Below, piece by piece: positions 1 to 48,722 of a stretch of 64,000 nucleotides of DNA. The stretch is from Paramoeba atlantica (taxonomy: Eukaryota; Protista; Discosea). The stretch is from contig CDRNVI010000062.1 in assembly GCA_977017575.1 (NCBI GenBank), positions 1-64,000 on the forward strand, in the 5' to 3' direction. The notes below the pieces were generated by a model. It ran no database searches and was not told the DNA's origin. It saw only the letters and a list, made by a program, of their open reading frames with translations. Positions within the stretch are counted from its first letter, which is position 1. Each line of letters opens with the position of its first letter. A program made the position numbers and the translations under genes.

Positions 1-738
1 GGGGTCCAGGGGGGGGTCCAGGGGGGGGGTCCAGGGGGGGGGGCATGGTCGATCAAATTTTTTCGAAAAAATTAGTTTTCGAAAAAAAACCGCAGAAAGG
101 GTAGCCGGGGTCTTGGCGCGCATTTTCCACCCCCCTACCCGGGGGTGACCCCCCCGCGTATCCGCAGGACGGGTCCGCCAAGTTCGGATTTTTTCGGAAA
201 AATTTTTTCGAAAAAAAATTCAACTTGGCGAAAAAAATGACAAAAAAAATATTTTTCCAAAATCGTTTCCCCTATTGTATTTTGATAGTTTGGGACCTCC
301 ACTAGCTTTCTCCGCAGTTGTTTTCGCAAGGTATCACTTCTTCGAACTGTGGTGCGCCCCTCAAAATGACCCACTTTTGACTAAAAAAGGTGAAAAAGTA
401 TTTTTCGGACCTAAAGGGGCATTTTTGTGTCGAAAGAATGGTATGGTTGGAGTCGTATTCTCTACCCAATACGTTCGGTAGGCTTTTATTCATGCCTGCG
501 AGTGATTTCCCACGCGCAAATGTCGGATTTAGTGCTCTGAGAGCAAAAATATGCGAAAATGACCCCATTTGTACCCGAAATTCGGCTATTTTTGGCTATA
601 ATCTTTCCGTTTTCCAGGCTAAATTTTCTTTTTTAGGCTCTTCGTTAAACGCGGCGGTAGTTTTCAACGCGAAGCGCGCAGCATGAGTGACTTCTAAGTT
701 GAAAGCAACCACCGCGTTTAACGAAGAGCCTAAAAAAG
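1..738. mobile_element. Non-autonomous family A (Helitron2/Helentron-like), long palindrome at right end, cut by window start
   Basis: Body matches copies at 19727, 26863, 44646 and 60050; ends in the ~110-bp palindrome TTTTTAGGCTCTTCGTTAAACGCGG...CCGCGTTTAACGAAGAGCCTAAAAA (~628-738). Confidence 0.8.
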
Positions 739-7300: not shown

Positions 7301-10300
7301 TGACTTTGTCAGTGAAGCATTTTGGGAGAGGACGAGCACCCGGAAGCGACGGAATACCTATGGAGGCCCTACAAGCTATCGCAAGTCACGAAGTTCTAAG
7401 AGAGCAGCTTTTAGGTATAATAAACAAAGTTTATGAGACCGGGTCTACGGATGAAGCTTGGCGAATGACACTCCAGATACCCGTACCAAAGAAAGGGGAT
7501 CTCACTGACATTTCAAACTGGAGGCCGATATGTGTGGTGAATAGCGTTGTTAAACTGATGAATCACATGATTCTTTCACGCATTCGGCCCAGCGTAGAAG
7601 GTTTCCTACGCGATAATCAGTATGGGTTTCGGCCAAACTGATCTACAGCTGGCGCCCAAATCATTATGAACGAGGTTAAAACTAAGGCTTTTCGAAAAGA
7701 CGGAATAATGGTAGCCTTTGTAGATTTTGCTAAAGCATTTCCCTCCGTATCCTTTGCTGCTATAAAAGCCTGCCTATATGCTTTCCGAGTTGGCAATCGA
7801 TTGTCCACCACAATCTTGTCCATCTATCGCGACTTGAAAGGAACAGTTCGAACGCCGTTTGGTAATACTGAACCTTTTCCAATCACCACAGGGATTCTAC
7901 AAGGGGATGTATTAGCTCCCTATCTATTCGTTATGGTGATGGACAGGATTCTACACAAGGCTCTCGACGACGGATCAGATGGTGTTCTTCTGAAATCTAG
8001 AGGTACACGAAGGCGAGGGTTAAACGAAAAACGACTGAGTGATATCGATTATGCCGACGACGTCGCGCTATTTAGTGATTCGATGGAAGGTTTGCAAAAT
8101 ATGATAAACAGCGTTTCTCGGGAAGCAGAGAAAGCTAATCTACGACTTGCGGTTGGTCAATCGAAAACTGCATGGATGTCTTTTGGTAAAGTTGCACGTT
8201 CCGAAAACGACCCCGTCATCTACAACAACAACTTGAAGGTACCAAAGGTGTGGTCATACAGGCATCTGGGGCAACGTCAAGATCAAGATTTTTCTTCCAC
8301 CGTAAAAGATCGATTAAAGCTTGCATGGGGATCACTCCAGCGTTTAAATGGAATTTGGTCTTCTCCTCTAAGTGAAGGGATGAAACTTCGACTTTATGAT
8401 GCCTTAGTTTACCCTGTTCTGAATTTTGGAATGGGAGCAGTTCATATTTCTCAAAAGGAGCTCCGTAAAATTGATATTGAGGTCAACACAATGAGAAGAA
8501 TTGCCACCCGTTCAAACAAAGTTGATGAGTACGGGTTATGCTACCCCAACGCTTCTCTCTATGTTAATACCGACCGGTTTTCTACTATTCATAAAGTGCA
8601 GCGAGCAAAACTGGTGGGACATATGATCCGTCATTCTTCAGACTTTCGGGAACTGATTCAATGGAAACAACGTAGCAACGCTAGATTACCTTCCCCAAGT
8701 GAAGCTTGTGTTAAAGATCTTGGCATTACTATTGAACAAGCATTGGTTTACGCCATGGACCGCGAGCATTGGTTCAGAATTACAGAACAACTTCGTGACA
8801 ACCTTGAACCAGCTGCAACCTATATAAAATATGGCACGCAAAAGTGGAGAACCGCCGTCACAAAAGCCAAGAAGACTAAAGACTTGCGCGAGTTACAGTA
8901 TATTGAAGAGTCAACGGATCCTTTCCCTAACTTTAAAGCTATTCAGATATATACGGATGCTTCTATTAAGAGTATGGTTAGTTCTAAGGAAATTCGAAGT
9001 GGCGCTGGTATTGTGGTTATACCAACGAAAAAAGATCCAATAAGATGTTCAATCCCACTGGAAGTTACAACAATTGAGAGAGCAGAACTTCAATCGTTTT
9101 ATTTAGCTCTCAACAAATTGCCAGAAAATTCATGCGCGTGCTTGTTTCACACAGATTCGCATTACGTTTGGGACTTCTTTCACAATTTACGAAATAAACG
9201 GCGCATTGTGGGATACACTGGGACAAAAAATGGCGACCTTAATGTACGTAATGCACCTTAATGTATAATGTGGACGCAAAGCTCAGGTTACTAAAATTCC
9301 ATTCGTATAATATATATTTGTGCAAGGTAAAGGCGCACATTGGAAACAAATGGAATGAGGAGGCAGATGGTCTAGCACTTTTGGCATCACGAAAAGTGGC
9401 ACGGGCTCCGACTCAAAAAAGGAGAAAAACAACTGCTAACTCGGAGGATAGTGAGAATTCACAACCGTTATGGTCTTTGAAAGCCTTACTCAAAAGGAAG
9501 CCCCTTGGAAATAAGCAAGCACAAGACATTCCATCATCCAAGCGCGAAGCTGAGGCGGAAGGGATATTTCGAGGGAAGGTTGCGAGAGCTGGCGGTAATA
9601 GGAAACCGTCTAAGCAGGGATAGAATTGATGGAATTATTTCTTTTCCAACTTAGAATACCTTGAGGATTATTCATAGGTTATCGGAAAAATATTGTTTGT
9701 TTGTACCGTATCAGACACATATAAACTCTGAACGGGGAAGCGATAGATGAAAGCTTTCAAGGTGTAAACATTAAGTTTTTCAACCGACTTTACGTCGGTC
9801 TTTTGGATTGGATTGGATCACCAAGATCTCGAAAGTGGACTGGATCTAAATCTAGTCGAAATGCGCATACATTCAAAGATCTTGTAGGCAAGAGTCGTGA
9901 GCAAATTGAGGACACAATTGAAGCTGAATGTGCAATTCTCCAAGACAAACTACGGAAAAACCATTCCAGCCCTTGGAGATTCATTCGCGAAATATGCGGA
10001 ATGAGGAAAACGGTTTTTAATTATGGCGCAGGTCAATCAAACCGGAAACGACTAGCAGCCGTTAAGGACTTCTCTAAAATTGCTAACCGAGGTGTTGGAG
10101 ATACAAAAGTTGAATTTGATGAGGCCAAAAACTTTGAAGGAGAAATCATGGATTTACCTTTCACAGAAGATGAACTTGCATGCGCTGCGCGTAGACTTAA
10201 ACGAAGCAAAGCCCCAGGACTCGACGAGATACCAGCGAAAGCGTACATAGCCATACTCGAAGAAAATTCTTTACGCCATCTCCTTCTTGGAATCATTAAC

Positions 10301-10430: not shown

Positions 10431-13400
10431 CACTCACTCACTCGCTCACTTTACACTAAGCCCCGGAATAGGGCGTTAGTTAAATATCTATCTGTATTTA
10501 CGTTCAATACATTCATCATCTAACTCTCCAACTGATTTCGTTTTCACGTCGATTGCCTCGTACTCGGTGCGCTTCGAAAGCGAAACACACAGCACCTTGC
10601 GTACACTGGATTTTATTGTCCCATCTTGGTTTCCGTCAAAGGGGATATTTTTCCGCGTTATGAGGTCGCGTCTCGTGGTCTACCTTTCTTGGTGCGGTTC
10701 GCGGCGGTACTTAATTGTGATCAAGGCGCGGGGCAATGCTGTGATAAGTGCCGTTCTAGTGTAGTAGCCGAGGTCTTGCGCCTTTTCTCTGAGAGAGCGC
10801 CGAAAAGAGCTGTCTTTTCCAACGTGTCACACTTATCGTTGCATGGGTTGCCGCAATGCCCCTTTACTTTAATCACGTAGAATTTGACGCCATTCTCCTC
10901 TAAGGTCTTTATTGCACCACCTAAATCCCAATAAATGGAAGGCCATTGTATCCTATTAGGTAATACGTTCGCCGCGTATTGCGTATAAAATGCCATGCTA
11001 CCCACGAATCCGTATGCAGTACGATTGTACCCTCAACTTTGGGTGCTCTCTGAATAGCTAGTAGTGCCGCATAAAATTCCGCTCTTTCTGGCGATGGTGT
11101 GCCAATAATCTCCTTACAAACAGTAGAACTAGCCACTTCATGGCCACACTGAACTTCAACAATCCCAATTCCAATCTTTCCGATGTAACCAGAACTAACT
11201 GAGGCGTCGGTATAAAGGTGTAGAACGTTGTTGTCACTTGAGAAAGGTGTTGGACCTTCTTCAGCGTACTGCAGGGCTGAAAGATCATTTTCCCGCTGTG
11301 CAGCAGCTGCAATGCGGTGCCAACCGCTTGATCTATAACCAATATACATTTTAGGATTCTCTAGCCCCATTTGAAGTTTTTCAACTTGTTTTTGCCAACA
11401 TTTTCTATCCTCCGCATATACCAGGGCTTCCTCGACTACTAATTCCATATCCCCGGTGCAAGCTTCGGATGGAGAACGAATTCGACGCTGCATCAGAACG
11501 AACGCGCCGCTGCATCAGTTCCGAATATATCTCTGAATTCCGTATTAAGTGTCCTACAAGACGAGCCCAGTTAACTTTGTGCAGTGTGGAAAAAAGTGGG
11601 TGTCTATATATAAGGCGGATATTGGCACACTTTTCCCAGAATGATCCAGTTTCGGACACTTACAAATAATACAACGCATCTTATTTACCCGTATATCTAC
11701 CCATTTCAATGTGGTTTCGCTCAACACTAATGTGTCCGAGTTGTAATTTAGGATAGTGTATACGAGGGCATCGAAAAAACGAAGTTTTGTCTTGACGCTC
11801 AAGGGCGATACCCATATCGGGGGATAGCGGCGGAGGTGGCGGAGGTGGCGGAGTGGCAAGAATTCAAAGTTTGAAGCACATGGTGCTCAGACGGCGAGTT
11901 TAAACCCGCTCATCGCAATATTCCCGGCGGCCTCACTCTAAGAGGCTGGGCTGAGAACCGAATAGGCCCAGTACTCGGAGGACCGTCCCGGACCCTCCTC
12001 TCAGGGAACCAGCTCCCTTACCCGGCTTACACCTCTTGGGTGAGCCGTGTTGACGTACAGTTCGTCGACGCAGCGTGTTGGCAACAGCACGTTGGTGCCG
12101 CCTTGGACAAGCGGAAACTGGTAGAGGATGTCGGCCTCGGAACTTCCAAATCTGTCTGTGAAGGGTCTGGCTCGCCAGTGACCATCCGGAGTTCTTTATC
12201 TCCGGAGCAATCCGGAAAATCCGATACCCATATGCCCCGAAATTTTGAGAAACCTGCCCACGTAAGTCGCAACCTGTCCCTGATACATGCCAATGGTTCA
12301 GTTTCATGGAAAAGATTTCCCAGATACCTATAGGAAAGTACTTTGAGCACCGTCCCCAAAGGATCAGATATCATTTCATCGGGGCCTCGTTGCCTTCCTA
12401 GTTGCATCCACGCTGTTTTAGCAGGGCCTACTGCTATTCTTAGGTTCGCGGAGAGGGCTTGTTCCGCTGTATCCTCAATCATACTCTGTAGATCAGCCTT
12501 GTTATCTGAAAAGAAAAGAAGATCATCAGCATAATTTAGATCCGTAAGACGTGTTTCCCTCAGGCCTCTGCTCTTGGATGATAGAAGGATGCCATGGGAT
12601 TTTGAATCAATAGCTTTGCTTAATATACGATCCAGAACCATTACGAAGAGGTAGGGAGCGAGGACATCCCCTTGAAGAATGCCGGTTGTAATGGGGAATG
12701 TTTCTGTTAAACCATATGATGTTCGCACGACCCCTCGCATATTCCGACATACTGACATAATCATTTCTCGCAATTTCGGTCCAATGTGAAACGCCACTAG
12801 GGATGCATGAATGGCACTAAATAAAACGGATGGAAAAGCTTTCGAAAAATCTAGAAAACCAATGCACATCCCGTTTCCTCTTAATGCTTTTACTCGTGCT
12901 TCGTTGAGAATCGCCTGGGCTTGCATTGTCGAACGGTCAGGTCTGAACCCACATTGATTATGGCGAAGCACAGGCTCTACATACGGACGAATTCGTTGTA
13001 ATATTAAACAGTTCATAAGTTTAACAACACAATTTACTAAGCATATGGGCCTTCAATTCTTTAAAAGAGTCAAGTCACCTTTCTTCGGTATCGGAACTTG
13101 TAGGACGTCACCCCAAACTTCCGGAGCCAATCCCGTGTCGTAAACGCGGTTGATAATGCTGAGCAACCACTTTCTAAGATAATCATTATCAACGATGCAC
13201 GCAAAAGCCTCCATGGGGATTTCATCCTTTCCCGGTGCCTTACCCCTCCCAAAGTGTGAAATTCCGCTTCGAAGCTCTTCCTCAGTGAAAGGGGCGTCCT
13301 CAAGTGTGTTTGTTGGAAGATTCGCCTCTAAGAATCTTATATTGTCGTCGCCCCCTGTGTCTCCAGCAAAAGCTTCAAAAAACGTTTTTATCTCCGCCAG

Positions 13401-15112
13401 CTTCTGTCTGTTTGAGGCCCCCGGTATGTTGAAGTCTGCTCGATCAACTCCACATATTTCTTTTACTGCTCTCCATGGGCTGGCGTGATTTTTCTTCATC
13501 TTAGATTCTAGGACTTCACAAGACCTAGTTATAGCATCCTCGATTGCTCCCCTGTTGTGTGATACTAGTTCATTAAAGTCCTTACGCCTTCTGCTTTGCA
13601 TGAAAATGTTGCGTAGATTATCTGGTTCAGCACCTTGCAATCCTTCAACAGGTGCCTGTATATCAAGAGATATTTTTGTGATTGGTTTCGGAATTTCCTT
13701 TCCCGAAGATCGAAGGCAAGAGGCAAGAAGATCCCAGGAAGGAAGATCTTCTGTATGCAGTTGCGCTGCGACCTGTTCACAAATTCTGTTGTTAAACTTC
13801 TCTGCATGTTCTGGGTTTGATAATTGAAACCAGTGTATTTTCGATCTTTTGATGTTGGACGATATCTTCCATTTGATTCGAATCTCTGCTCGCACAAGAA
13901 AGTGTACTGTCGGCGTAGGAGCGGCAAAAACTTGATGATGTCGCAGAGCTGATGCAAAGCGTGAGCACACTGCAATGTGATCCAACTGGCGTTTAGCATC
14001 ATTAGGCAATATGCATGTCCATACTCGCTTGCTAGGGCATAAGGAGTGTCCTGATTTGCAATCTATCCCTTCCAAAATCCCCTTCAACCTTTCAACAACA
14101 AGTTCGTCTTCTTCTGTCGTTTTGCCGAAAGTGAGAGGTGCATTTAAGTCCCCAAGTAGAAGTGCGGGTCTTCGAGGGGCTTTGCCTACTGCTTCGTGAA
14201 ACGCGTTTGTCAAAGAAATATCAAACTCTTGTTTGGCCTCCTCTGGGGAGTCACGCGTCGGCCCATATGCGTTGAGCATAAAGGCTGACCCTCCTTCGAT
14301 GTTGAACTCGCCGGCAATTATCCTATCATTTACTTTCCACGCCTTTATTGGCTCTTGCGTGATGAACCCCATACCGTTATACCCTTTCACTGCAGACATA
14401 AGGTAGATGAAAAAGATTTTATTCCCGTGTCGAAGCTTGCGCTTTAAAATATCAAATCCTTCGCCAGAAGTAAAAGTAAACCTTGTCTCCTGGAGAGCCA
14501 GTATATGCAAGTTGGTTTGTGCCATGTATCGCACAATCTCGTGCAATCGAGCAGAAGCTTTCAGTTTGAAAACGTCGTCACCTTCAAGTTTCAATGATGT
14601 CGTATTAAGAGTGCCTACAGCCAGATACTTCTTCACAGCAGACCCTTTCGGGTCGTCGTCGCGTAGGGCATGCTTGCCACACAGTACCCTAGTTTTCCGT
14701 GCTTTTCTACGGTTGTTCGAACGCCCAGGTTTTCGAATGCGTGCTCCGCATAACACGATTCGCGAATCATACGGCGGAAAGGGAAGCGTTTCCGATCGCT
14801 GGGGTACTTTACCCGCCAGCGACCTAGCTGAAAGAGGAAACCAGGCCCTCGTTGAGTTACAGTGCCCTTCCAAATCCGAAACTCCGCACTGCTCGCGTAT
14901 CTCCAGGAGAGTGCGATTTGTAACCTGGGCGAATAATTTTACTAATGCTCATCACTGCAAGGGAGCGAAGTTTAGCATGCCCGTCTGACCCCAACATCGG
15001 GTCAAACAGAGCACCCCGACCTAACGTGGACCTAAACAGAAGGTTAATAATTCCTAGCTGTGCAGGCCCGGGCGCCTCCGCCATATTTTTGAAAATGTTC
15101 AAAAAAACAAAG
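10431..15112 (-). mobile_element. Near full-length RTE-like LINE family C with RNase H; frameshifted, contains a SINE
   Basis: ORFs 14857-15102, 13053-14873 (APE), 12027-13016 (RT: LDFSKAF, GILQGD, YADD), 10921-11493 and 10721-11005 (RNase H: YTDAS, RAE, TDS, VKGH). Candidate 8-bp TSD GTTTAGTT (10423-10430, 15113-15120). Confidence 0.88.
11818..12221 (+). mobile_element. tRNA-headed SINE family B, copy 2
   Basis: 12-bp TSD CGATACCCATAT (11806-11817, 12222-12233); removing it restores the RT-thumb reading GIWVS|PLSVKTKLR. Confidence 0.85.
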
Positions 15113-16698: not shown

Positions 16699-17538
16699 CG
16701 AAAGAGCCTAAAAAACAAAAATTGGCTTCGAAAACAGGAGAAACCGGAAGGATTGGAGCCAAAAAAAGCCGATTTTCAGGTAAAAATGGGGTCAATTTTA
16801 GCTATTTTCGCTCTCAGAGCACTAAATCAGACATTTGCGCTTGGGAAATTACTCTTAGGCATGAATGAAAGCCTACCGAACGTATTGGGTGGAGAATACG
16901 ACTCCAACCATACCATTCTTTCGACACTAAAATGACCCTTGGGGTCCGAAAAATACTTTTTCACCTTTTTTAGTCAAAAATGGGTCATTTGGAGGGGCGC
17001 ACCACGGTTCGAAGAAGGGATACCTTGCGAAAACAACTGCGGAGAAAGCTAGTGTAGGTCCCAAACTATCAAAATGCAATAGGGGAAACGATTTTGGAAA
17101 AATATTTTTTTTGCCATTTTTTTAGCTAAGTTGAAATGTTTTTCAAAAATGTTTTCCGAACTTGGCGGACCCGTCCTGCGGATACGCGAGGGGGTCACCA
17201 CCGGGTAGGGGGATATAAAATGCGCGCCAAGACCCCGGCTATCCCTTCTGCGGTTTTTTTTCGAAAACTAATTTTCTCGAAAAAATTTGCTCGACCATGA
17301 CCTCCCTAATTTTCCCCCCCTGGACCCCCCTAATTTTTTCGAAAAAATTTGCTCCACCATGACCTCCCACTGGACCCCCCATTTTTATCATTTTTTTTTT
17401 TAAATTTTGGACCACCGGAGCCCCCTTTTATATTTTTTTCCTTTATTATATTACTGTGTTCCTCTTTATATTTTCACTGTTCTTGTTCACTTTTTTTTCA
17501 ATAATCGAGGGTAGAGCGGTAGTTATACAACCACCGCA
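16699..17538. mobile_element. Family A copy; palindrome mostly lost at left, short-hairpin end at right
   Basis: Body homology; ends GCGGTAGTTATACAACCACCGCA. Confidence 0.8.
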
Positions 17539-17553
17539 GTACGAGTGGATTAT

Positions 17554-18128
17554 ATTGCGGTGGTTGTATAACTACCGCTCTACCCTCGATTATTGAAAAA
17601 AAAGTGAACAAAAACGGTGAAAATATAAAGAGGAACACAGTAATATAATAGAAGAAAAATTTATAGAAGGGGCTCCGGTGGTCAAAAAATTTTCCGGGGG
17701 GGGGTCCATGGGGGGGAGCATACCGCACGAAACTTTTTTGAAAAAATTATTTTTCGAAAAAAATCCGCAGAAAGGGTAGCCGGGGTCTTGGCGCGCATTT
17801 TCCACCCCCCAACCCGGGAGTGACCACCCCTCGCATGCGCAGGACGGGTCCGCCAAGTTTGGATTTTTTCGGATTTTTTTTTTGAAAAAAAATTCAAATT
17901 GGCGAAAAAAATGGCAAAAAAAATATTTTTTCAAAATCCTTTTCCCTATTGTGTTTTTATAGTTTGGGCCCTATACTAGCTTTCTACACCGTTGTTTTCG
18001 CAAGATATCCATTCTTCGAGCCGTGATACGCCCCTCAAAATGATACATTTTTGACTAAAAAAGGTGAAAAAGTATTTTTCATACCCCAAGGGGATTTTTT
18101 GTGTCGAAAGAATGGTTTTTGTGTCGAA
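17554..18128. mobile_element. Family A copy in opposite orientation, truncated before the palindrome
   Basis: Begins ATTGCGGTGGTTGTATAACTACCGC; mirrors the preceding copy. Confidence 0.8.
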
Positions 18129-18444
18129 AGATGACCTTGGTGAAAGTTCCATTTTGGCTTCTTGGGATGCCACTGGTATTCGAAGAGAAATGTGGGGGTA
18201 TGAGCCATGGAGACGTCCATTGATCGACGATATCAAACAGAAAGCACAGTCTGGAAATCTTTTGGAAACCGTTGAAATTTCTGAAGACCCTCCAAGCGAT
18301 AGTGACATTGAGGATATCTCCGATCAGCGTGATTCAAGACGAACAAGTCTTCCTTCCGGATCTTTCCCAATTCCATGGCGAAACTTTCCTCTCCTGCTTG
18401 TGAAGAACATCGGAAGGCCCCGAAAAACAGTTCCTGTGGAAGAA

Positions 18445-19227
18445 ATCCAGGCTAAACTGGTCGAGGGAGATACTAAAGGCACCTTTGGAAAACCACCTCG
18501 AAACTAGAACGGTATCACCCGTTAAAGACCCTTTTGCCACATCAGAATGCTCTACAAACCGGGGGATACCGTTCCAGTTTCGAGGTGATTTCCCAAAGTG
18601 CCTTTAGCATCTCCCTCGCCCACTTTAACCCGGATTACATAGCCATCCGAACATGCTCCCTATGGCGCTTTATAGCTTCCAACGCGAGGAAGTCGTCGTC
18701 GCTGCGGTAAAAAGACAGAAAGGCTACGCCTTCTGCCTTTTTGCCTTGCGCCTCCTCCTTCCTCTACGGCCTCGCGTGTCACACACTTCCGAGTAAAGTT
18801 TGGCCTTTGTAGGTATATTACCGGAACGTTGTGGAGAAATATCGAATGAAACCAAAGCGTATACACGTATATCAGGCCTCAAACTCTCAAAAAACGGTCT
18901 AGGAGTTGATTTGGGAAAAATATATTTTTTGACTTTCACCCACAAGTTTTCAGTTTAATTTTTCAAAATTTCAAAAATTGCTATGATCACCCTGGTGGGG
19001 AGGTGGGGGGGGGCAGGGGATACCCATCGGAATTGTTGAAAAACTAGTGATCTCGTCACTCAATTCGATTCATACGTCTTTGTAATTTTTTTTTTCAAAA
19101 ACTGACCTGAAACGATATCGGGCACGATATCGGGCCACAAATCGGGCACGAAATGGGGCACGAAATCGGGCAAGAACGGGCACGGCGAATTAACCTACGG
19201 TAGCGAGGGAGTAGTATCTCCATCAAT
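18445..19227. mobile_element. Non-autonomous family B, copy 1 (190-bp palindrome at left, short hairpin + CAAT at right)
   Basis: Arms ATCCAGGCTAAA..GAGGGAGATACTAAAGGCACCTTTGGAAAACCACCTCGAAAC and its reverse complement, ~33-nt spacer; right end GAGGGAGTAGTATCTCCATCAAT. Confidence 0.75.
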
Positions 19228-19309
19228 ATAAATATAATCCAGGCTAAAATCGGGCACGGCGAATCAACCTACGGTAGCGAGGGAGTAGTATCTCCCTCAA
19301 TATAAATAT

Positions 19310-19687
19310 AATCCAGGCTAAAGTGGACGAGGGAGATACTAAAGGCACCTTTGGAAAACCACCTCGAAACTGGAACGGTATCACCCGTTAAAGACCCTTT
19401 TGCCACATCAGAATGCTCTACAAACCGGGAGATACCGTTCCAGTTTCGAGGTGGTTTTCCAAAGGTGCCTTTAGTATCTCCCTTGCCCACTTTAGCCTGG
19501 ATTACATAGCCATCCGAACATGCTCCCTATGGCGGAATTGTTGAAAAACTAGTGATCTCGTCACTCAATTCGATTCATATGTCTTTGTAAATATTTTTTT
19601 CGAAAACTCACCTGAAACGAAATCGGGCCACAAATCGGGCACGACGAATTAAATCTACGGTAGCGAGGGAGTAGTATCTCCCCCAAT
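19310..19687. mobile_element. Family B, internally deleted copy 2, tandem with copy 1
   Basis: Same palindrome (19310-19503) and same right end GAGGGAGTAGTATCTCCCCCAAT. Confidence 0.75.
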
Positions 19688-19726
19688 AACTTTTTACCCG
19701 CCCAAGTCATTTTATAAATGTTGGTA

Positions 19727-20424
19727 TTTTCTTTTTTAGGCTCTTCGTTAAACGCGGTGGTTGTTTTCAACTTAGAAGTCACTCATGCTGCGCGCTTCGC
19801 GTTGAAAACTACCGCCGCGTTTAACGAAGAGCCTAAAAAAGAAAATTTAGCCTGGCAAACGGAAAGATTATAGCCAAAAATAGCCGAAATTCGGGTAAAA
19901 ATGGGGTGATTTTCGCGTAGTTTTGCTGTCAGAGCACTAAATCCGACATTTGCGCGTGGGAAATCACTCGTAGGCATGAATGGAAGCCTACCGAACGTAT
20001 TGAGTAGAGAATGCGACTCCAACCATACCATTCTTTCGACACTAAAATGACCCTTGGGGTCCGAAAAATACTTTTTCACCTTTTTAGTCAAAAATGGGTC
20101 ATTTTGAGGGGCGCACCACGGTTAGAAGAAGGGATACCTTGCGAAAGCAACTGCGGAGAAAGCTAGTGTAGGTCTCAAACTATCAAAATACAATAGGGGA
20201 AACGATTTTAGAAAAATATTTTTTTTGTCATTTTTTTAGCTAAGTTGAATTTTTTTTCAAATTTTTTTTTCCGAAAAAATCCGAACTTGGCGGACCCGTC
20301 CTGCGGATACGCGGGGGGGTCACCCCCGGGTAGGGGGGTGGAAAATGCGCGCCAAGACCCCGGCTACCCTTTCTGCGGCTTGTTTTCGAAAGCTAATGTT
20401 TTCGAAAAAAATTGCTCGACCATG
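19727..20424. mobile_element. Family A copy (palindrome at left) joined directly to RepHel coding sequence
   Basis: Palindrome ~19727-19845; the body runs into the Rep-encoding frame at ~20421. Confidence 0.8.
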
Positions 20425-22388
20425 AAAAAAACGATACCCTTTTCGCCAGCAAAGCGAAAGGCATCACAAGGTCAGATCTACGCCTTATACAGGCGATACG
20501 GGCTGCCAACTTACAGGATCGCAGTGGGTCCAAACAAGAACGATAAAAATCTAGCTCTAAGAATCATTACAAATGATGAGAGCGAAAAAATGCAGGAAAT
20601 GCGGGCCAACCTTTCGAACGGCAAATCCGTACTCTTCTTACCAAATTGTACGGAATGTCGAATGTAGATGAGGTAAAGAAGGAACGTGACGTTCTTGAAG
20701 GCCTCTTTGGTCGCCCTCGAGCATTTTTTGGTGTCGTAGAATGCCAGAAACGAGGTGCGCTACACTTTCATAGTGTACTATGGACGAATCTTAGTCCACA
20801 CTACGTCTCCGAATTAATTCACATTGTGAAGGAGCACGATGGTCTCGCGAAGTCTTTGAGTACGACGATGCGCTCTGATCTGCACGAGTGGGCGCGAAGG
20901 ATCAGTAAGGAGCTTTACGGCCCTGCAACGCTCGACTACTCAAAGATGTATCGCGGAGGACTACATATCATTCCTGATGAAGAGGATGATTATTTCAGGG
21001 AACATGTGGCCAAAAGTGCTGTTGATGTTCAGCAGCACGTTGGTCACAGACCCATGTTTTTAAAAATGAAAGGAAACATAAACAAGAACAAATACCGATA
21101 TGGCATTCCATCCGTACTTCATGAAAATGAAACGGAAGTTGGAGAGGTTGAGGTTCAGATGGATGAATCTGGACAACCGGAATTCCGGCTCAAGCCTCCA
21201 ACACGGTCGATTAAAAATGATGCCATTTGGTCAGTACTTGATGAACGGTCTCTGATTGTGCTTCTGCGCAATAACCATGACCCGACACAAGACACTAAAC
21301 GGGAATCCATCACCGTTCCGTACAATGAAACACTCACTGCTTGCGTAAGATGCAATACATGTGCAGTTTTCATTGGGAGCGAAGGCCCCGGCATAAAAAT
21401 TATGCAGTATCTCATAAAATATATGAGCAAGAACATTGGTCCACCTGTGTACATTGTACCAGCACTTCGCGCAGCCAATGACCACCTTCAAAGGGGTCTG
21501 AATTCAGAGCACAGAGCGCAAACTGACATTCCGATGGCACGCTTAGTTTTACAGAAATTGTCGAACATGACACATCGAAAGATGGAAGTTTCAATCGAAA
21601 TGGCAACTGTCTTTTGTCTCGGCCAACCCTCCGAGTACATGAGCCATAACTTCACATGGATCAATATGAACCGTGTAATGAAGTTCCTGGCAAACATCTC
21701 AAGTGAGTTAGATCACAGATATATAGAAATCAGTGACGATGATTCGTCACAAGACTCCTATATAGAGTTCGACAACGGTATCTTAGAGGCTCCTATAATG
21801 ATCACCGAACATGATTGTGCAGTTATTGCACCGCTCCATGTGCGTTACATGCACAGGGGCGAAGATCTTCAAGACCTTGAACTGTATTCCTATGCAAGCA
21901 TTGTCAGCGTAAAGAAGAAAAGAGCTGAGCTAGCTCAAGAAGAGCCCGATCATGATTCAGATTTTGAGTCAGGGACAAATCGAAGACGTCGTCGCGGACG
22001 TCGTGCTAATGGGAGATACGCCTTTGAGGAAATTGAGGGCCTCCCGGAATTTGAGCCTGGATATATTGTTAAGCAACAGTTGCGCTCTTTGCACACTGTG
22101 CCAGCTATACCAGGTTTTCCCATATTGAGTTCTTCAAAAGAACCTGGGACACGAGCTCGAAGCCAGCTTCGAGTAGGGAAACGCATGGTGGCATTGTTTT
22201 CCCCATGGACGAAAGGCTCACCGAGCCATGAAATGACCCTAGAAGGGTTTGAAAAGCTTCTCAATGAAGCGAAAGTAAATACGCCTGGAAAGTATGACAC
22301 AATGTGCAACTTTCTTCGGCTTTTACATGCTTCTAAGAATACAGAGAACGCGGCAGATTTGTATAACGCAAAGATGCTTGCCATCTAG
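20421..22388 (+). pseudogene. Helitron-type HUH Rep domain, 5'-truncated and frameshifted
   Basis: Motif 1-like YGLPTYRIAVGPN (ORF 20245-20667), HUH motif VECQKRGALHFHSVLW, CNT motif and Y2 motif QYLIKYMSK (ORF 20646-22388). Confidence 0.88.
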
Positions 22389-22899
22389 AAGAAGCAAGAT
22401 TAGCACGCAACATTGTGTACGAAAATGAGCTTGAAGTCCGAGAGGTTGAACCTCATCTTCAAGATGCTCTTGAAGCACAGCAGAACACTGCAGTGGTCAA
22501 TGAAGAGCGATTGGTTCAGCAGAATGCATACTGCGAACTACAAACGTGAACTTTAACGGCCGCGTTAGGAAGTTCTACTGAGAACTCCCCTGAAGAAAAT
22601 GTTGATCTTGCATCGACGATGACAAGGACGAGGTCCAATATTTCAGTCATAAATGCGAGAGAGCGCTATGCTGAAATGATTCAAAACGAGCGACTTGCAA
22701 CTTCGGCTCAATCTGAGCCAAGTGCACCAATGGACAGAGCTCATTTTAATGAGGATCGTCCGCTGGCTCGCAGTAATACGACGAGATTACGTTCGATCGC
22801 AGCTACATATTGCGCGAAGTCAACAGTTCCATTGAACTGAACTATGCACAGAAACAGTGCGTAAATCAAATTGAAAATTTACTAAACGGGAAACTAGAC

Positions 22900-24090
22900 C
22901 GCGAGCGGAAATGAATGTTTCTGCTCGGTGGCCCCGGAACCGGGAAAAGTCTAGCTTCCCGTTTTATAATGCAAGAACTGGGAAGCCAATGTATTACAAT
23001 GGCGCCCACTGGGATCGCCGCATCAGTACTGCACTGTTTCACAATACACGCTTCCCTCTGCATACCGATAGGGGCTACTGCAAGAAATTTGAAACATCTT
23101 TCAAGCAGTAGGCTTCTAAAGGTATGAGAAATGTCGATTAATCATAGTCGACGAAGTGTCAATGATCAGCAAGTGTTTCCTTGCTTGTATCAACACTAGA
23201 TTGCAGCAAATCAAAGGCAATGAGCAGCTCCCCTATGGAGGCATCAACATGCTCTTTTTGGGAGATTTTTATCAGCTGCGACCAGTACAAGGAGCATCTC
23301 TTACCATAGAAGATAGTCCTCCTGGTAATAATCCCATTTTTGGGAATATTTTTCAAGTCTCGCATGTGTTTGAACTCAAACAGCAAATGCGAGCACGACA
23401 AGATACTGTATTTTCAGATATCTTGCGTCTTGTTCGAAAAACTCCGAATGAGGGGTTGAAGTTCATCCAATTGGTAAAACCTCTGACCTCTGAGGACCAA
23501 GAAAAGTTCCGCAATGCAATTGTCATTGTTGGAACAAATATTGAACGACACAAGATTAATGTCGCAATGGCAAGAATTTTTGCCAGACGTCACAATTGCC
23601 CATTGTTTGCATGGACAGGCGATAACGTCCAAGGTAAACTCATTGACACACACCCTGAAGCATTTTCTGTATTTGTAAAAGGAGCACCCGTTGTAATCAC
23701 GGAGAACATTGCTCCTTATACATTGAAAATTGCGAATGGGACCGTGATTGAAATGAAAGATCTTGTGTCAGACGATTTGTCATACGACACTATTGATGGT
23801 GTTCGTTATCTAAGAAAAGCCCCTTCTTTTATGCAATGCATTGAGAAGGGGTCAGGAGTAGGGTTTTACGCCAAAAAGGCGCAGCACCATGACAAGACAA
23901 CCCAAAGAAACTTTTAAGTGGAATTGGGATTTGCCTATACGTATCACAAAGTACAAGGTATCACCGTGAAGAAAGGTGTTATTCTTGACTTGAATGATAG
24001 GACGTGGTTGAGGACTCGCCAAGCTCACAGTAGCAATATCCAGGGCACAATGCTTCGGTGATATTCGAGTGCTCCCTGGCATGGGCACAG
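22900..24090 (+). pseudogene. PIF1-family SF1B helicase of the Helitron-like element, disrupted
   Basis: GGPGTGKS, MAPTGIAA, DEVSM, GDFYQLRPV, ELKQQMR, GAPVVITENI, ELGFAYTYHKVQG, and KLTVAISRA in shifted frames. Confidence 0.92.
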
Positions 24091-24749
24091 ATCGCCCAGG
24101 AACACACCTGAATTCAGGTTACCATAGGCCTAAATTTCCGGCCATGGAAAAAGCAAATCGGCTTACCGATTTGTCTTATCAATTCTAAGACATTAGAATG
24201 AAACCATCTTCTCAGGAAGACCTCTCCAGGGGGGAAGCACGCTTGATACCGGTCACAAGCCCGGCGTCTTCAGCTTTGGCAGAAGAAGTGTGACCCCAAC
24301 GCTCACGTGGCCCCTACCAAAAAAAATGTCCCCATTAAGAAGTCTCCTTTAAAAGCACCTTCAAAAACAAACCATTACTTCAAAATTATCTGCCAGGAAG
24401 TAGAGCACCCCCCGCCCCAGCGGGTCTGCACCCACTCGAAGGGCCCGCGCAACGGGCCCTTCAAAAAAAAGATTTCAGAACCTTGCGTCCTTCAAAATTA
24501 CCTACCACAAAGTAAAGCACCCCCCTCGCCAGCACCTCCTAGAAGGGTCCGAAACTAAAATTACGAAAAAGTACGAGCGATCCGAACGCTCACACGGCCG
24601 CTACGAAAAGAAGAGGTATCCATCCTGCTCTGTTAAAAATTCCCCGAAGCGAAGTAAATCACATCCCTGCGTCAGCGTGTCTCGAAGTTCAGTAGTATCT
24701 GATTCACTTTTTTATTCACCTTCATCTCTTTCACCATTCATCGCACCCA

Positions 24750-24807
24750 CTTAGTATACCTACTCATTTAGTATACCTACTACGTATACTATCCTGGAAC
24801 ATGGTTT
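24750..24807. mobile_element. Solo right end of the AACCATG-type MITE
   Basis: GTATACTATCCTGGAACATGGTT|TA is identical to the end at 60403-60427. Confidence 0.7.
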
Positions 24808-24859
24808 AATATCTGATTCACTTTTTTAATCACCTTATCTTTTTACCCTTCCTCCCTAT

Positions 24860-25225
24860 ATGTCTACTCTTCCGGAGAACGTCCTCACCGCAGAATGCGA
24901 TACATCGCTGAAGATCAGTGATGTTAAGCGGAAGCGGGATGACTTGCACGAATCAGAGATGAACTTGAGTTCAGCTCTGGGCGAGCGTGACGAGCGCTCG
25001 ATCACTGTGGAGCATGTTCCGGCGGAAATGACAAACAAAAATCTAAGTGAGTATTATGCCTTCTTTGGTGACGTAAAACTTGTCACAATAATTAGAAAGT
25101 TCAAACGTGCGTATGTCTGTTTTGCTACGACAGAACAAGCTAAACATGCATGCAGCACGTACCGCAAGAGCAAGGACAGCCAAAAAACACAGCCAAAAAA
25201 GCAGGTGAAGAAGATGAAGTTTTGA
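24860..25225 (+). CDS. Small single-RRM protein
   Basis: RNP2-like ITVEHVP, helix NLSEYYAFFGDV, RNP1-like RAYVCF, then ATTEQAKHA; basic tail. Confidence 0.7.
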   Translation: MSTLPENVLTAECDTSLKISDVKRKRDDLHESEMNLSSALGERDERSITVEHVPAEMTNKNLSEYYAFFGDVKLVTIIRKFKRAYVCFATTEQAKHACSTYRKSKDSQKTQPKKQVKKMKF

Positions 25226-25477
25226 AAGGCGAAGATTAATTGACAAAGAAAAGTGATACAGGAAGAAAGTTTTTTTCTTTGTCGAAGAAGTGAATTTCTA
25301 AAACGTAGTTTTCCGGGGTTTTTTCAGTGCACGTTTTCATGTTTTTCTTCTCCACTTTTTCTCCTCTAAAAGCCCATACTGTTCTGTTTAACAAGTAAAG
25401 TACTACTCGTTCTCCAAATCTATATTTTCATTCTCCTAAATTTTCGTTCTCCAAATTGTCCATCGTTCTCCAAATTT

Positions 25478-25697
25478 TTCTTTTCTAGGCTCTTCGTTAA
25501 ACGCGGAGGTAGCTTTCAACGCGAAGCGCGCAGCAGTGGTGCCTTCTAAGTTGAAAACAACCACCGCGTTTAACGAAGAGCCTGGAAAAGAATACAACCA
25601 CCGCAATAACACATTTATTTTTCTTTTTTAGGCTCTTCGTTAAACGCGGTGGTAGTTTTCAACGTGAAGCGCGCAGCATGAGTGACTTCTAAGTTGG
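25478..25697. mobile_element. Family A mini-element (palindrome + TACAACCACCGCAAT end) followed by a partial palindrome
   Basis: Palindrome ~25478-25590, terminal motif ~25594-25609, new palindrome arm from ~25622. Confidence 0.65.
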
Positions 25698-25974
25698 TGA
25701 TCTCCAAAAGATCATGAATAATCTACTTTTTTGGGGGGAAAAGCTCGATTTTTCGGCAACAATTGCGAAATATTACACCGAATTTGGGCCGTTTTGGATG
25801 CCCTTAATCTGTCGACAAAAACGCCGCAGAATGGTAGGTGAGGTCCCAAACTCTCCAAATACGGTTTAGGAGTCGATTTTGGAAAAATAATATTTTTGCT
25901 TTTTTCGGAATTTTTGACCTTGTCGGACCCCTCCCGCGCGTACCAGGGGGGGGGGTACCCCACTCGCACCTTTA

Positions 25975-26862: not shown

Positions 26863-27766
26863 ATTGCGGTGGTTGTAAAACTACCGCTCTACACTCGATT
26901 ATTGAAAAAAAAGTGAACAAAAACAGTGAAAATATAAAGGGGAACACAGTAATATAATAGAAGAAAAAAATATAAAAGGGGGCTCCGGTGGTCCAAAACT
27001 GAAAAAAAAATTTGAAAAAAATGGGGGGTCCATGGGGGGGGTCCAGGTGGGGGGTCCAGGTGGGGGGTGGCATGGTCGAGCAAATTTTTTCGAAAAAATT
27101 AGTTTTCGAAAAAAAACCGCAGAAAGGGTAGCCGGGGTCTTGGCGCGCATTTTCCACCCCCCTACCCGGGGGTGACCCCCCCGCGTATCCGCAGGACGGG
27201 TCCGCCAAGTTCGGATTTTTTCGGAAAAAAAAATTTGAAAAAAAATTCAACTTAGCTAAAAAAATGACAAAAAAAATATTTTTCCAAAATCGTTTCCCCT
27301 ATTGTATTTTGATAGTTTGGGACCTACACTAACTTTCTACGCAGTTGTTTTCGCAAGGTATCACTTCTTCGAACTGTGGTGCGCCCCCGAAAATGACCCA
27401 TTTTTGACTAAAAAGGTGAAAAAGTATTTTTCGGACCCCAAGGGTCATTTTAGTGTCGAAAGAATGGTATGGTTGGAGTCGCATTCTCTACCCAATACGT
27501 TCGGTAGGCTTCCATTCATGCCTGCGAGTGATTTCCCACGCGCAAATGTCGGATTTAGTGCTCTGAGAGCAAAAATATGCGAAAATGACCCCATTTTTAC
27601 CCGAATTTCGGCTATTTTTGGCTATAATCTTTCCGTTTTCCAGGCTAAATTTTCTTTTTTAGGCTCTTCGTTAAACGCGGCGGTAGTTTTCAACGCGAAG
27701 CGCGCAGCATGAGTGACTTCTAAGTTGAAAGCAACCACCGCGTTTAACGAAGAGCTTAAAAAAGAA
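26863..27766. mobile_element. Family A, complete ~900-bp copy (short-hairpin end left, palindrome right)
   Basis: Inserted after GTAAAGTGACTA; the uninterrupted equivalent flank is at ~39100-39125. Confidence 0.85.
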
Positions 27767-28228: not shown

Positions 28229-28632
28229 TATTGAGGCCACGATTTGTGGCCCGATTTCATGCCCGATATCGCGCCCGATATCGTTTCAGGTGAGTTTTCT
28301 AAAAAAAAGTTTACAAAGACGTATGAATCGAATTGAGTGACAAGATCACTAGTTTTTCAACAATTCCGATGGGTACCCCCTGCCCCCCCTCCCCACCAGG
28401 GTGATCATAGCAATTTCTGAAATCAGAGGAAGGAGGAGGCGCAAGGCACAAAGGCAGAAGGCGTAGCCTTCTGTCCTTTTGCCGCGGCGACGACGACTTC
28501 CTCGCGTGGGAAGCTGTAAGAGGTCCTAGGGAGCATCTTTCGATGGCTCTGTAACCCAGGCTAAAGTGGACGAGGGAGATACTAAAGGCGCCTTTGGCAA
28601 ACTACCACAAAACTGGAACGATATCTCCCGGT
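28229..28632. mobile_element. Family B copy in reverse orientation, half palindrome
   Basis: Reverse complement of parts of 18560-19190; left end retains ATTGAGG (reverse of CCTCAAT). Confidence 0.7.
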
Positions 28633-28989
28633 TTATATATATTTTATATATAAAAAGGGGGCTCCGGTATATTTATAAAAGGGGGCTCCGGTGGTCCAAA
28701 ATTTTAAAAAAAATTGAAAAAAATGGGGGTCCATCGGGGGGGGGGGCACAAGTCGCTTTTTGAAAATCTTGATTTTCGAAATCGAGCGCAGGGAAGTGGT
28801 AGAGTAGGCCGCGGCGATGACGTTCCACGACCACCACCTGTGTGTACCCCCCCCCCCTGGTACGCGCTGGAGGGGTCCGACAAGGTCAAAAATTCCGAAT
28901 TTTTTGGGATGACCAAAAAAATTTTTTTTGGACCCGGAAAAAAGTAAAAATTTTATTTTTCCAAAATCGACTCCTAAAACGTGTTTTAG

Positions 28990-29870
28990 GAGTTTGGTTT
29001 CTCGAAAAAAACCCGCAGCAGCGGTGGCCGGGGTCTTGGCGCGCATTTTCCACCCCCCTACCCGGGGGTGACCCCCCCGCGTATCCGCAGGACGGGTCCG
29101 CCAAGTTCGGATTTTTTCGGAAAAAAAAATGTGAAAAAATTTCAACTTGGCGAAAAAAATGGCAAAAAAAAATATTTTTCCAAAATCGTTTCCCCTATTG
29201 TATTTTGATAGTTTGGGACCTACACTAGCTTTCTCCGCAGTTGTTTTCGCAAGGTATCACTTCTTGACCCCCCGCGTTCGCCAAGTTCGGATTTTGAAAG
29301 AACGGGTCCGCCAAGTTCGGATTTTTTCGGAAAAAAAATTCAACTTGGCGAAAAAAACGGTAAAAAAAATATTTTTTCAACCTTTTTGCCCTATTGTATT
29401 TTGACAGTTTGGGACCTATACTAGCTTTCTGCGCAGTTGTTTTCGCAAGATATCACTTCGTGGAGCCGTGGCACGCCTCCCACAATAGCCCATTTTTGAC
29501 CAAAAAGTGCGAAAAAATAATTTTCGGACCTAATGGGGTCTTTTTATGTCAAAAGAATGGTGTGGTTGGAGTCGCATTCTCTGCCCAATACGTTTAGTAG
29601 GCTTTCATTCACGCCTACGAGTGATTTTTCACACGCAAATACAAGATTTAGTGCTCTGAGAGCAAGAATACGCAAAAATTACCCCATTTTTATCTGAAAA
29701 TCGGCTAATTTTGGCCATAATCCTTGTGTTTTCTTTAGCTTTCCAGGCCGAATTTTCTTTTTTAGGCTCTTCGTTAAACGCGGTGGTAGTTTTCAACGCG
29801 GAGCGCGTAGCATGAGGGACTTCTAAGTTGAAAACAACCACCGCGTTTAACGAAGAGCCTAAAAAAGAAA
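28990..29870. mobile_element. Family A copy (palindrome at right), rearranged
   Basis: Body homology with internal duplication at ~29270-29330; palindrome ~29755-29870. Confidence 0.8.
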
Positions 29871-30328
29871 AGCTTATTTTCAACCCCTTGCAAAAAATTA
29901 CATTTTTGCTACACAGTTAACATAAAAAATGGGTAACCTCGATTGTGCTCCCGGTGAGGCCCCGGAGTTGCGAGAGGCCTCCATACCCCACAACATGTGC
30001 ATTATGACAGATAAGGGTGCATTGTGACAGATACGGGAGCATTTATGACAGATCAGGGTGCGAGTTTCTATGACAGATAAGGGTGCGGGTAGAGTAGGTG
30101 GTGGTAGAGTAGGCCGCGGCGATAATTCCCCCCCGCCCCCCCCCCCCCCTCACACACATGTGGGGGTTACCACTCCCTGTAAACGCGGAGGTAGTTTTCA
30201 ACGCGAAGCGCGCAGCTGTGGCCTTGGGGGGAACCACGACTGTATGTTGGATTGCCAAGCGTTGAAACAGAAATGTTGAAAGTCCTAAAAAAGGATAAAC
30301 AAGCGCACATTGAGACCATGTGACTAAG

Positions 30329-32935: not shown

Positions 32936-34285
32936 TCACTCATTCGGAGCGCTCGACAACAGCTCTCGCGCGTGTTCCACAACCTGCTCTTTATCATGCA
33001 GCGCTAACAACGTCTCGTCCTTGAAATAGATCACCAAATCGTGTAGTTTTCTTTGATACATCTCCGCCTCTTTTTTATACCGCAGCAACGCCTCCTCGTT
33101 TCTTCCCATCCCTCGAGAGCTTAGGCTATTCCCTGAAAAACTTGGTCCTCTCGTAAAACGATTGGAACTTACAGACGATGAAAAAGTGCCTTGCGTGGGG
33201 GTTCGTGGTTGTGTCCTCAAATTCGCTCGTACTCCAGTTTCTCGAACACTCGATACCCTTGAAGAAACAGCAGCATTCGTATTTTTACTCAAACCATTCG
33301 ATCGCGACATGAAACCCGTTCGATTTGTCGAAACACTCGAGGAGCGTTGGGTGGGATACGACAAATTCGATGTCGTTGGGGTTCTCGATGATCGGGGAAG
33401 CACACCCTTTTGGTTTTTATCCTTTACGGCGGCGCTCATTTGAGATAAACTCCCGGAAGGCACCGTACGCTGTCTCGAGGCACTACGCACTCTCCCGAGT
33501 GCTTTTCCCAGCGGGGTCTCAAACGAGGAAGAAGGCAGAGGTGGTCGAATGCTGGGCTCGAAATCAAAATTCCCCTCCCCGTGCGCGTCCAACGCATAAG
33601 AACCCATTTTCGAAAAAGGTGTGCGATGCGCAGAGGAACACGACGAAAACAAACCCCGCTGTCCGGACACCGCCCCGGTTTTACTTCTCTCCTTTTGCAT
33701 CCCCACCACCGCGCTTGTCCCCCCAACACTCGGGGCTCGACTACTTTTTCCCACACTCCCTGCACGATACGAATTCACACTCGACCGTGTCAACCGCGGA
33801 GAGGTTCGTCCTAAACGACCTCCAGAGCTACTTGAGAGCTCTTTTACCCCCCCTAGCCCCCCATATTGTCGTTTTTGTGGGATTTGTTGTTGGGTTTCTT
33901 CTTCCCCCCTTTTCTCTCCCCCCCACCCCCACCCCCCTACCCTCTCACTCTGCCCCTTCATCCACTGCAGCAACTCTAAATTATGCTGAAAGTTCCCCGC
34001 GGCTAATTTGCGTACCTCCAACTCCTTCGTCGTACACTCTGCCGCAAACAGCTCTTGCAGTAATTTAAAATTATGCAGCGCCTCCGAAGGGGAGCGCACG
34101 GGGGAGCGGACCCGGTGCCGGGGACATGGCGTGGAGCTTAAATAAGAAAATAAAAAAACAAAGGCCTCCCCGGAGCCGCATTGCTCGATGGAGGTGTAGG
34201 AGAGTCCCAGGACGGTGTTGAGCCAGGAAAGGCAGTCGGAGCGGGAAGAGGAAGAGGGGGGAGGGCAGGATAAGGGGTCGGACAT
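32936..34285 (-). CDS. EB1: EB1-family microtubule plus-end binding protein
   Basis: CH domain (LSWLNTVL..IEQCGSG, NFKLLQ, FQHNLELLQWMK), long Ser/Arg linker, C-terminal coiled coil (MYQRKLHDL). Confidence 0.85.
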   Translation of the reverse strand: MSDPLSCPPPSSSSRSDCLSWLNTVLGLSYTSIEQCGSGEAFVFLFSYLSSTPCPRHRVRSPVRSPSEALHNFKLLQELFAAECTTKELEVRKLAAGNFQHNLELLQWMKGQSERVGGWGWGGEKRGEEETQQQIPQKRQYGGLGGVKELSSSSGGRLGRTSPRLTRSSVNSYRAGSVGKSSRAPSVGGTSAVVGMQKERSKTGAVSGQRGLFSSCSSAHRTPFSKMGSYALDAHGEGNFDFEPSIRPPLPSSSFETPLGKALGRVRSASRQRTVPSGSLSQMSAAVKDKNQKGVLPRSSRTPTTSNLSYPTQRSSSVSTNRTGFMSRSNGLSKNTNAAVSSRVSSVRETGVRANLRTQPRTPTQGTFSSSVSSNRFTRGPSFSGNSLSSRGMGRNEEALLRYKKEAEMYQRKLHDLVIYFKDETLLALHDKEQVVEHARELLSSAPNE

Positions 34286-48690: not shown

Positions 48691-48722
48691 TAATTAAAGA
48701 TATACTAATTTTTACGAAGCTA

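Follow-up and report, generated by a model that had tools for sequence, protein, structure and literature searches.

Positions 1 to 64,000 of contig CDRNVI010000062.1 (Paramoeba atlantica assembly GCA_977017575.1; hereafter the window) contain, at 19727-25606, a broken Helitron-like gene, RepHel, in which a HUH/Y2 Rep is joined to a PIF1-type helicase, together with pieces of a shorter repeat, family A, that ends in a giant palindrome. The window is part of contig ctg4008l (203,687 bp) in ENA assembly ERZ24900291. The short end of family A is called 5′ and the palindrome 3′, as in Bao and Jurka (PMC3627910). Comparisons also draw on 125 kb of extra DNA (loci L002-L005 and L007-L010, on other contigs of the same sample), so that 189 kb were examined in all. 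The features of the locus are as follows (ORF, open reading frame).

19726-19846 (-): 3′ giant palindrome of a family A copy, with 46-nt arms and a 29-nt spacer; element end at ∼19728, flank starting with T
19727-20424 (-): family A copy without its first 208 nt (reference positions 209-904), 96.6% identical to the reference at 26863-27766
20424-20427: deletion junction from family A body to Rep interior; three other RepHel copies match from 20427, with Rep continuing upstream
20427-22388 (+): Rep half of RepHel, N-terminus gone; motif 1 at ∼20500-20535, HUH motif 2 at 20763-20771, Y2 motif 3 at 21408-21431
22389-24070 (+): linker and fragmented PIF1-type helicase; Walker A at ∼22927-22950, Walker B at ∼23150-23165, several stops and frameshifts
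24860-25225 (+): RRM-domain ORF of 121 aa, part of the RepHel element; helicase followed by an RRM ORF also in L005 and L010
25473-25592 (+): the RepHel element's own 3′ palindrome, with 43-nt arms and body-left polarity; CTAGG inner arm as in L008, L005 and L010
25593-25606 (-): 14-nt start of a family A copy's 5′ end (TTGCGGTGGTTGTA), cut at the 5′-hairpin loop; flanking A at 25607
25619-25961 (-): family C, whose palindrome is common with family A; one arm lost and spacer inverted, the sole flipped case of 27

The coding region is recognizable throughout. Rep motifs 1 to 3 read YGLPTY, ECQKRGALHFH and YLIKYMSK, the helicase carries GGPGTGKS, IIVDEVSM, FLGDFYQL and YTYHKVQG, Pfam returns Helitron_like_N and PIF1, and the HUH/Y2 residues (H40/H42 and Y255/Y259/K262) are invariant in alignment A1. 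The ORF nonetheless contains at least eight stops or frameshifts (in the Rep half, a frameshift near 20650 and a stop codon at 22386-22388), and its N-terminal part is missing. Upstream of 20427 the three other RepHel copies contain more Rep, zinc-finger-like pieces and a weak match to DUF6570, a domain that HELIANO uses as a marker of HLE2 (PMC11417382). In the sister copy at L002 this match scores 22.5 bits (E 1.6e-4, under the cut-off of 24.3); the region is deleted in the window, and the domain is found in 17 of 24 long homologues. Motif 2 takes the form RG[S/A/T/C/N]xHxH in all 88 homologues that show the motif, RGS being commonest, and RGLPH occurs in none of the 88. No apurinic endonuclease was found on the genes that follow the helicase in L005 and L010 or in 24 homologues, and none is evident in the window translation. 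Every close relative of the Rep, helicase or RRM protein comes from another contig of the same sample: the nearest relative elsewhere is a 42%-identical fragment in a JGI metagenome, and the closest distant homologues sit on contigs too short to reveal element ends.

Family A is ∼904 bp long (reference copy 26863-27766). The window contains more than ten of its copies or ends, and young copies differ by 1-2% from the consensus. Arms of the palindrome at 19726-19846 are 96% complementary; eight further palindromes in the window have arms of 40-45 nt, again around a 29-nt spacer, for a total size in family A of 115-121 nt. Folded as single-stranded DNA they reach -42 to -52 kcal/mol (z -9.8 to -11.8), values equalled by 0 shuffles. 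The opposite, short end consists of TT, GCGGTGGTTGT, AAA and ACTACCGC, and folds into a hairpin (z -4.5). It can also be written TTGCGGTGGTTGT-AAA-ACTACCGC, and the first of its two sites corresponds, as reverse complement, to ACAACCACCGC within the outer arm of the palindrome. The two ends are joined in this way by an 11-bp asymmetric inverted repeat, which lies 2 nt from the 5′ end and, as ACAACCACCGC, 19-27 nt from the 3′ end within the outer arm. The same pair of sites in fact occurs at both ends, separated by a 3-nt loop at the 5′ end and by a 43-nt insert at the 3′ end. No separate small hairpin lies downstream of the 3′ repeat in family A; the repeat is itself inside the giant hairpin. 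Spacer polarity is almost constant: across the window and the extra loci the body lies on the side of the GGTAG arm in 26 of 27 palindromes (this count and that of 5′ ends below come from an exhaustive recount, earlier pattern scans having missed some imperfect copies). Mismatches near the palindrome loop are fixed, and the arms have therefore not been homogenized as a whole.

The polarity rule, together with L008, identifies the palindrome at 25473-25592 as the end of the RepHel-RRM unit. L008 aligns with the window for 1034 bp (82% identity), starting at 24594, crossing the RRM gene and running into the palindrome, which has the CTAGG variant there too and is not followed by a short tip. L005 and L010 define a second subfamily with another RRM paralogue: helicase and RRM are followed by a region 70% like the 3′ body of family A and then by the variant inner arm, joined here to a family A copy that lies downstream. 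Judged from sequence, the autonomous element has its ORF upstream of a terminal giant palindrome, as is usual in Helitron2. On the same grounds the palindrome at 19727 and the tip at 25606 belong to family A on the opposite strand, and the locus is a nested or adjacent composite that has undergone one deletion. Because three other copies are intact across 20427, the 20424/20427 join is a deletion junction private to this locus; a single deletion would have removed the 5′ half of RepHel along with family A positions 15-208. The locus is dead: a broken RepHel copy lies against, and probably within, a short non-coding copy of opposite orientation.

An initial annotation of this DNA had treated 19727-25609 as one element bounded by the palindrome and by a short-type end at ∼25609. 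The palindrome, Rep, helicase and short end (TACAACCACCGCAAT at 25593-25607) are all present, but the outer two are not the ends of a single unit, given that RepHel-RRM ends in the 25473-25592 palindrome here as in L008. Neither this palindrome of opposite polarity nor the RRM ORF between helicase and short end appeared in that account, which also named the HUH/Y2 and PIF1 domains correctly without stating that the gene is broken and lacks its N-terminus. Its estimate of at least ten family A copies or ends is borne out by our mapping, as are the ∼29-nt spacer and the complementarity between the short-end site (part of TTGCGGTGGTTGT) and the arm site ACAACCACCGC; its figure of ∼110 bp for the palindrome was too small.

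As to how the composite arose, on balance we lean towards RepHel having jumped into the 5′-hairpin loop of the same family A copy, leaving the 14-nt tip outside; otherwise the tip would derive from a third copy. The family A piece has diverged from its consensus by 3.6% and the Rep piece by 2.6%, values that allow the nested order. The opposite age order, with RepHel the older of the two, would rule nesting out; it finds no support once indels are set aside. The two outer flanks of the composite share an 8-nt inverted match, a length reached by 3 of 587 other pairs. The arrangement looks like the intermediate proposed for the birth of reverse-oriented Helitron2 elements (Fig. 8 of PMC5148889), although here it apparently died.

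Family A copies are inserted between an A and a T. An A precedes all 20 independent 5′ ends, and also the tip at 25606 (A makes up 28% of the window); the two exceptions among 29 5′ ends are junctions with a preceding 3′ end. The 5′ TT is present in 28 of the 29, and in 18 of 21 3′ ends (an incomplete set of copies) the base after the terminal A/G run is a T. Empty paralogues, half-sites only, read CA^TT, AA^TT and A^TA; that of the copy ending at 738 is CA^TTAAAG, with the A remaining on the 5′ side and the element ending at CTAAAAAAG. No fixed target site duplication (TSD) is common to the eight complete copies, the longest direct match between 5′ and 3′ flanks being 7 nt.

Three head-to-tail 3′/5′ junctions (L007:6709, L009:17769 and L010:13442) and six cases of repeated 35-38-nt 5′ ends resemble footprints reported for Helitron2 elements of Fusarium (PMC5148889) and fit either circular intermediates or self-insertion, but are no proof of circles. 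Element 3′ ends are ragged, with the outer arm running on for 0 to ∼9 nt past a CTRR word (CTAA, CTAG or CTGG), and the extra bases, most of them A's or T's, match the inner arm. At L002:3011-3160 the inner arm contains a 16-nt insert (at L002:3058) that mirrors the outer flank, and the flank is itself duplicated, suggesting that the host switched templates across the hairpin once the element was in place.

Family C has the same 3′ palindrome, with a body that is ∼70-75% like family A in parts and otherwise different. It is found also at L009:17848 and at L010:2079, 5866 and 14570, and in L010:2717 its 5′ end is that of family A. The flipped spacer at 25619-25696, where one arm is lost, looks like the product of a one-off template switch.

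Together these data make it likely that a Helitron2-like (HLE2-side) RepHel has family A as its non-autonomous partner, and that the locus is a dead nested or adjacent composite with one deletion. The partnership is likely because the 3′ palindrome is common to both. By analogy with Helitron biochemistry, the HUH/Y2 Rep would nick at the 5′ TT and stay bound while one strand is peeled off by the PIF1 helicase. Folded on that strand, the 120-nt hairpin, with its 11-bp site, would mark the second cut, after which the strand could be closed into a circle and pasted at A^T. More speculatively, this may be a deep, separate Helitron-like lineage in a euglenozoan, in which the 3′ terminator is a self-priming hairpin whose cut 3′ end folds back and extends on the inner arm before circularization or integration. 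We consider this rather unlikely; if true, it would explain the ragged, arm-matching 3′ ends and offer a handle on the way in which HLE2 elements form their second strand and their 3′ end.

Several observations weigh against this reading. Neither an intact RepHel copy nor a RepHel 5′ end was recovered in the 189 kb, so that a 5′ end common to RepHel and family A is putative; that the enzyme would act on family A-type ends is argued from analogy. Among the paralogues, no complete empty site combines the two flanks of a single copy. Covariation in the hairpin is slight (3 of 39 pairs). For the nested order, the site of RepHel insertion would be T^T given the young 5′ loop variant TAAAAC, becoming A^T only with the older TATAAC. 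Finally, a quick maximum-likelihood tree separates Rep from 11 RGLPH-type Reps (SH-aLRT 100) and yet sets it on a long branch at the base of 43 RGS/RGA-type homologues (support 85). This tree is unrooted and contains no named HLE2 references, and the 43 homologues were picked by their likeness to the query; it thus shows ‘not HLE1’ better than ‘inside HLE2’. For its construction the window Rep pieces were joined with X at the break, and the 11 RGLPH-type Reps were taken by motif from contaminated genome bins. Helitron1-type Rep motifs were seen in eighteen prokaryotic genome bins (L013-L030), mostly on short contigs, with L013 on a contig of 363 kb; these are probably eukaryotic contamination.

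Family A might instead be moved by some other enzyme (a DDE transposase or another HUH protein), with RepHel having picked up its family A end through recombination or read-through. DDE elements are abundant in the genome, the RepHel end in L005 and L010 is a mosaic fused to downstream family A, and no RepHel 5′ end was seen. We nonetheless find this account improbable: family A has neither the terminal inverted repeats nor the fixed TSD of DDE elements, rolling-circle elements would account for its asymmetric ends, its tandem junctions and its repeated 5′ ends, and the palindrome, in a variant form, terminates both of two RepHel subfamilies that differ in their RRM genes. Slightly more improbable still is that 19727-25609 is a real mobile element with family A outer ends and a reverse-oriented RepHel inside (HLE2-reverse, like FoHeli4/5 or Helitron-2_CRe). 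Such an element would hardly keep an inner 3′ palindrome, a 5′ hairpin cut to 14 nt and a Rep whose N-terminus is lost at a junction across which three other copies are intact, and no second copy of that junction exists in the DNA examined; this is so even though the 5′ tip and 3′ palindrome at the two outer ends agree in polarity, and reverse ORFs are known in Helitron2, with a proposed origin in opposite self-insertion (PMC3627910; PMC5148889, Fig. 8). Least credible is that the giant palindrome is a parvovirus-like rolling-hairpin origin, with Rep nicking opposite it and terminal resolution flipping it, as the size and imperfect structure of the hairpin, the HUH Rep, the ragged outer arm and the one flipped spacer at 25619-25696 might suggest: terminal resolution predicts about half of the spacers flipped, against 26 of 27 in one polarity with arm mismatches fixed, the lone flipped spacer goes with the loss of an arm, as expected of a one-off template switch, and the helicase here is superfamily 1 (SF1) PIF1, not the SF3 type of parvoviruses.

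Other family A copies in the window are listed here.

1-738 (+): copy clipped by the window start; empty paralogue of its 3′ flank at 13572/13573 (CA^TT)
16702-18116: two 3′-truncated copies, head to head, with 5′ ends at 17539 (-) and 17555 (+)
26864-27766 (+): complete reference copy, with 5′ TT and the 11-bp repeat in a short hairpin; 3′ palindrome at 27652-27766
28994-29871 (+): older, broken copy; palindrome at 29753-29871 intact
44643-45506 (-): complete copy
47642-47985 (-): diverged, 5′-truncated copy with palindrome
60051-61259 (+): complete copy, split by a TA-flanked inverted-repeat element (∼60137-60427)

The head-to-head pair, with 15 nt between its members, makes a 250-nt inverted repeat at 17422-17672. 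The flanks of the copy at 45506-44643 (45507-45520 and 44629-44642) agree at 11 of 14 positions, by chance or as a decayed duplication of variable length; CRe-type Helitron2 elements have TSDs of 7-19 bp. RepHel-RRM copies at L005:11352-14343 and L010:10136-13440 are 96.6% identical across the junction that cuts their own 3′ palindrome; the downstream family A copy provides a new 3′ end, and the whole has been copied as a unit by transposition or duplication.

Further repeats lie among these. TA-flanked inverted-repeat elements starting with AACC occur at 60137-60427, 24784-24812, 48721-49104 and 49428-49783, and in the window and L008 alike one end of the 60137 type has a fixed place immediately upstream of the RRM gene. 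Palindromes of ∼200 nt (82-nt arms, 38-nt spacer) characterize a second repeat family, present at 18444-18667, 19306-19534, 28425-28637 and 53736-53866, directly upstream of the RepHel locus among other places; it had no family A match in the searches run. Another 5′-type end, A|TTGCGGGGGTTGT, followed by a longer self-complementary stretch, is found at 48777-48856 and at L010:5778-5700, in the latter case 10 nt after the 3′ end of a family C copy. At 6274-9261 and 12027-14873 there are LINE-type elements, both with an apurinic endonuclease and a reverse transcriptase and the first with RNase H as well; DDE transposase remnants (IS1595/Merlin-like, DDE_Tnp_4, Tc3-like and DDE_1/CENP-B) are located at L007:4015-4668, L002:4666-5226, L008:8403-9548 and L009:11495-12642.

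The host genome is eukaryotic, with long unbroken ORFs on one strand (ClpB/Hsp104, a MIF4G protein and a GHMP kinase) and numerous LINE and DDE elements. A 449-aa host ORF at 32936-34285 (-) has no Pfam match; an Atlas lead, fairly strongly scored, suggests a divergent EB1/calponin-homology protein. Four tRNA genes cluster on both strands among repeats at L002:3966-4464. The spliced-leader core pattern is absent from the window and the extra loci, and an Rfam search returned tRNAs only. Host genes, searched against homologues, PDB and Atlas, could be placed no more closely than ‘eukaryote’. The kinetoplastid-like host proposed in the initial annotation was thus neither confirmed nor contradicted by the host tests. 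Trypanosomatids, to our knowledge, are reported to lack DNA transposons. Helitrons were rejected for them in a survey of 57 genomes (PMC12278014), Merlin is the only DNA element reported for Bodo and Perkinsela (PMC8101967), and unverified Helitron-like ORFs are mentioned for the euglenozoan Diplonema (PMC10161547). If the host were a free-living kinetoplastid, the present elements would add rolling-circle transposition to a group for which the first two of these studies record no Helitrons (in trypanosomatids) and Merlin only.

Ends of the Helitron2 type have been studied less closely than those of Helitron1, and the literature searched describes only short hairpins; within its incomplete coverage we found no Helitron-like element with a terminal palindrome this large. 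A 120-nt hairpin that holds the repeat, combined with an A^T target and a deep RepHel, widens the known grammar of ends and would be missed by tools that seek 11-18-nt repeats plus a short stem. Outside the sample the element ends had no matches in JGI metagenomes or prokaryote genomes; viral contigs gave no Rep motif matches, and a phage search matched helicases only. A third Helitron clade has been described in Paramecium (PMC13085455).

The initial annotation saw here a Helitron2-like group with an enlarged hairpin, made up of family A and RepHel. A non-autonomous role for family A is supported by the shared 3′ palindrome and Helitron2-type 5′ ends, and neither the TC...CTRR ends of Helitron1 nor a fixed TSD, which it had named as grounds for doubt, was seen. 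The group and the enlargement are also supported, but a simply grown Helitron2 hairpin does not describe the element, whose 3′ repeat is inside the palindrome and whose target is A^T, not T^T.

Comparison with described systems makes this explicit. In Helitron2 (PMC3627910) or HLE2 (PMC11417382) an asymmetric terminal inverted repeat of 8-15 bp lies 0-2 bp from a 5′ T and folds into a hairpin, with its partner ∼20-30 bp from the 3′ end; family A has a 5′ T, a folding 11-bp repeat 2 nt from the 5′ end and a partner 19-27 nt from the 3′ end, and it likewise has no fixed TSD and a RepHel without endonuclease, probably with a DUF6570-type N-terminal region to judge from homologues and the weak match in L002. 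In Helitron2, however, the 3′ repeat stands upstream of a short hairpin rather than in the outer arm of a 115-121-nt palindrome, and the target is TTTT^T/C or T^T rather than A^T; motif 2 here is RGALH. FoHeli1 and FoHeli2 of Fusarium oxysporum (PMC5148889) resemble our elements in having hairpins at both ends, the 3′ repeat within a hairpin, multiple 5′ termini, self-insertion and non-autonomous derivatives. Their hairpins are short, with the 3′ repeat 38-51 bp from the end, whereas the ∼120-nt hairpin reaches the terminus; the targets also differ.

The proto-Helentron of Phytophthora infestans (PMC4067079) shares the 5′ TT, insertion at A^T and an HLE2-type RepHel without endonuclease, and its terminal word recalls the CTRR found 0-9 nt inside the 3′ end here; but it ends exactly in CTAG, its HELIANO repeat is 3.6 kb inside and no giant palindrome is reported for it, whereas our ends are ragged. 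Helentron, HINE and DINE-1 elements (PMC4067079) are similar in having a non-autonomous partner, a 5′ repeat nested in a short stem-loop and variable terminal bases, variable terminal T's being known in Helentrons (PMC4067079). They differ in their apurinic endonuclease, their TT target and palindromes of 5-10 bp in place of ∼120 nt; RGALHFH has neither the serine that follows RG in motif 2 of Helentrons (PMC4067079) nor the leucine of Helitron1. With Helitron1/HLE1 (Helraiser) the elements share a HUH/Y2 Rep fused to PIF1, an A^T target and the lack of a TSD. In contrast to it they begin with TT and not TC, have asymmetric repeats and no RGLPH, fall on the other side of a strongly supported branch, and carry 0-9 further element-like bases after CTRR, which in Helitron1 is terminal and follows a short hairpin. 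Overall the system would work like Helitron2 yet departs from it in two defining respects, the T^T target and a 3′ repeat placed before a short hairpin, and is not a plain member of that group.

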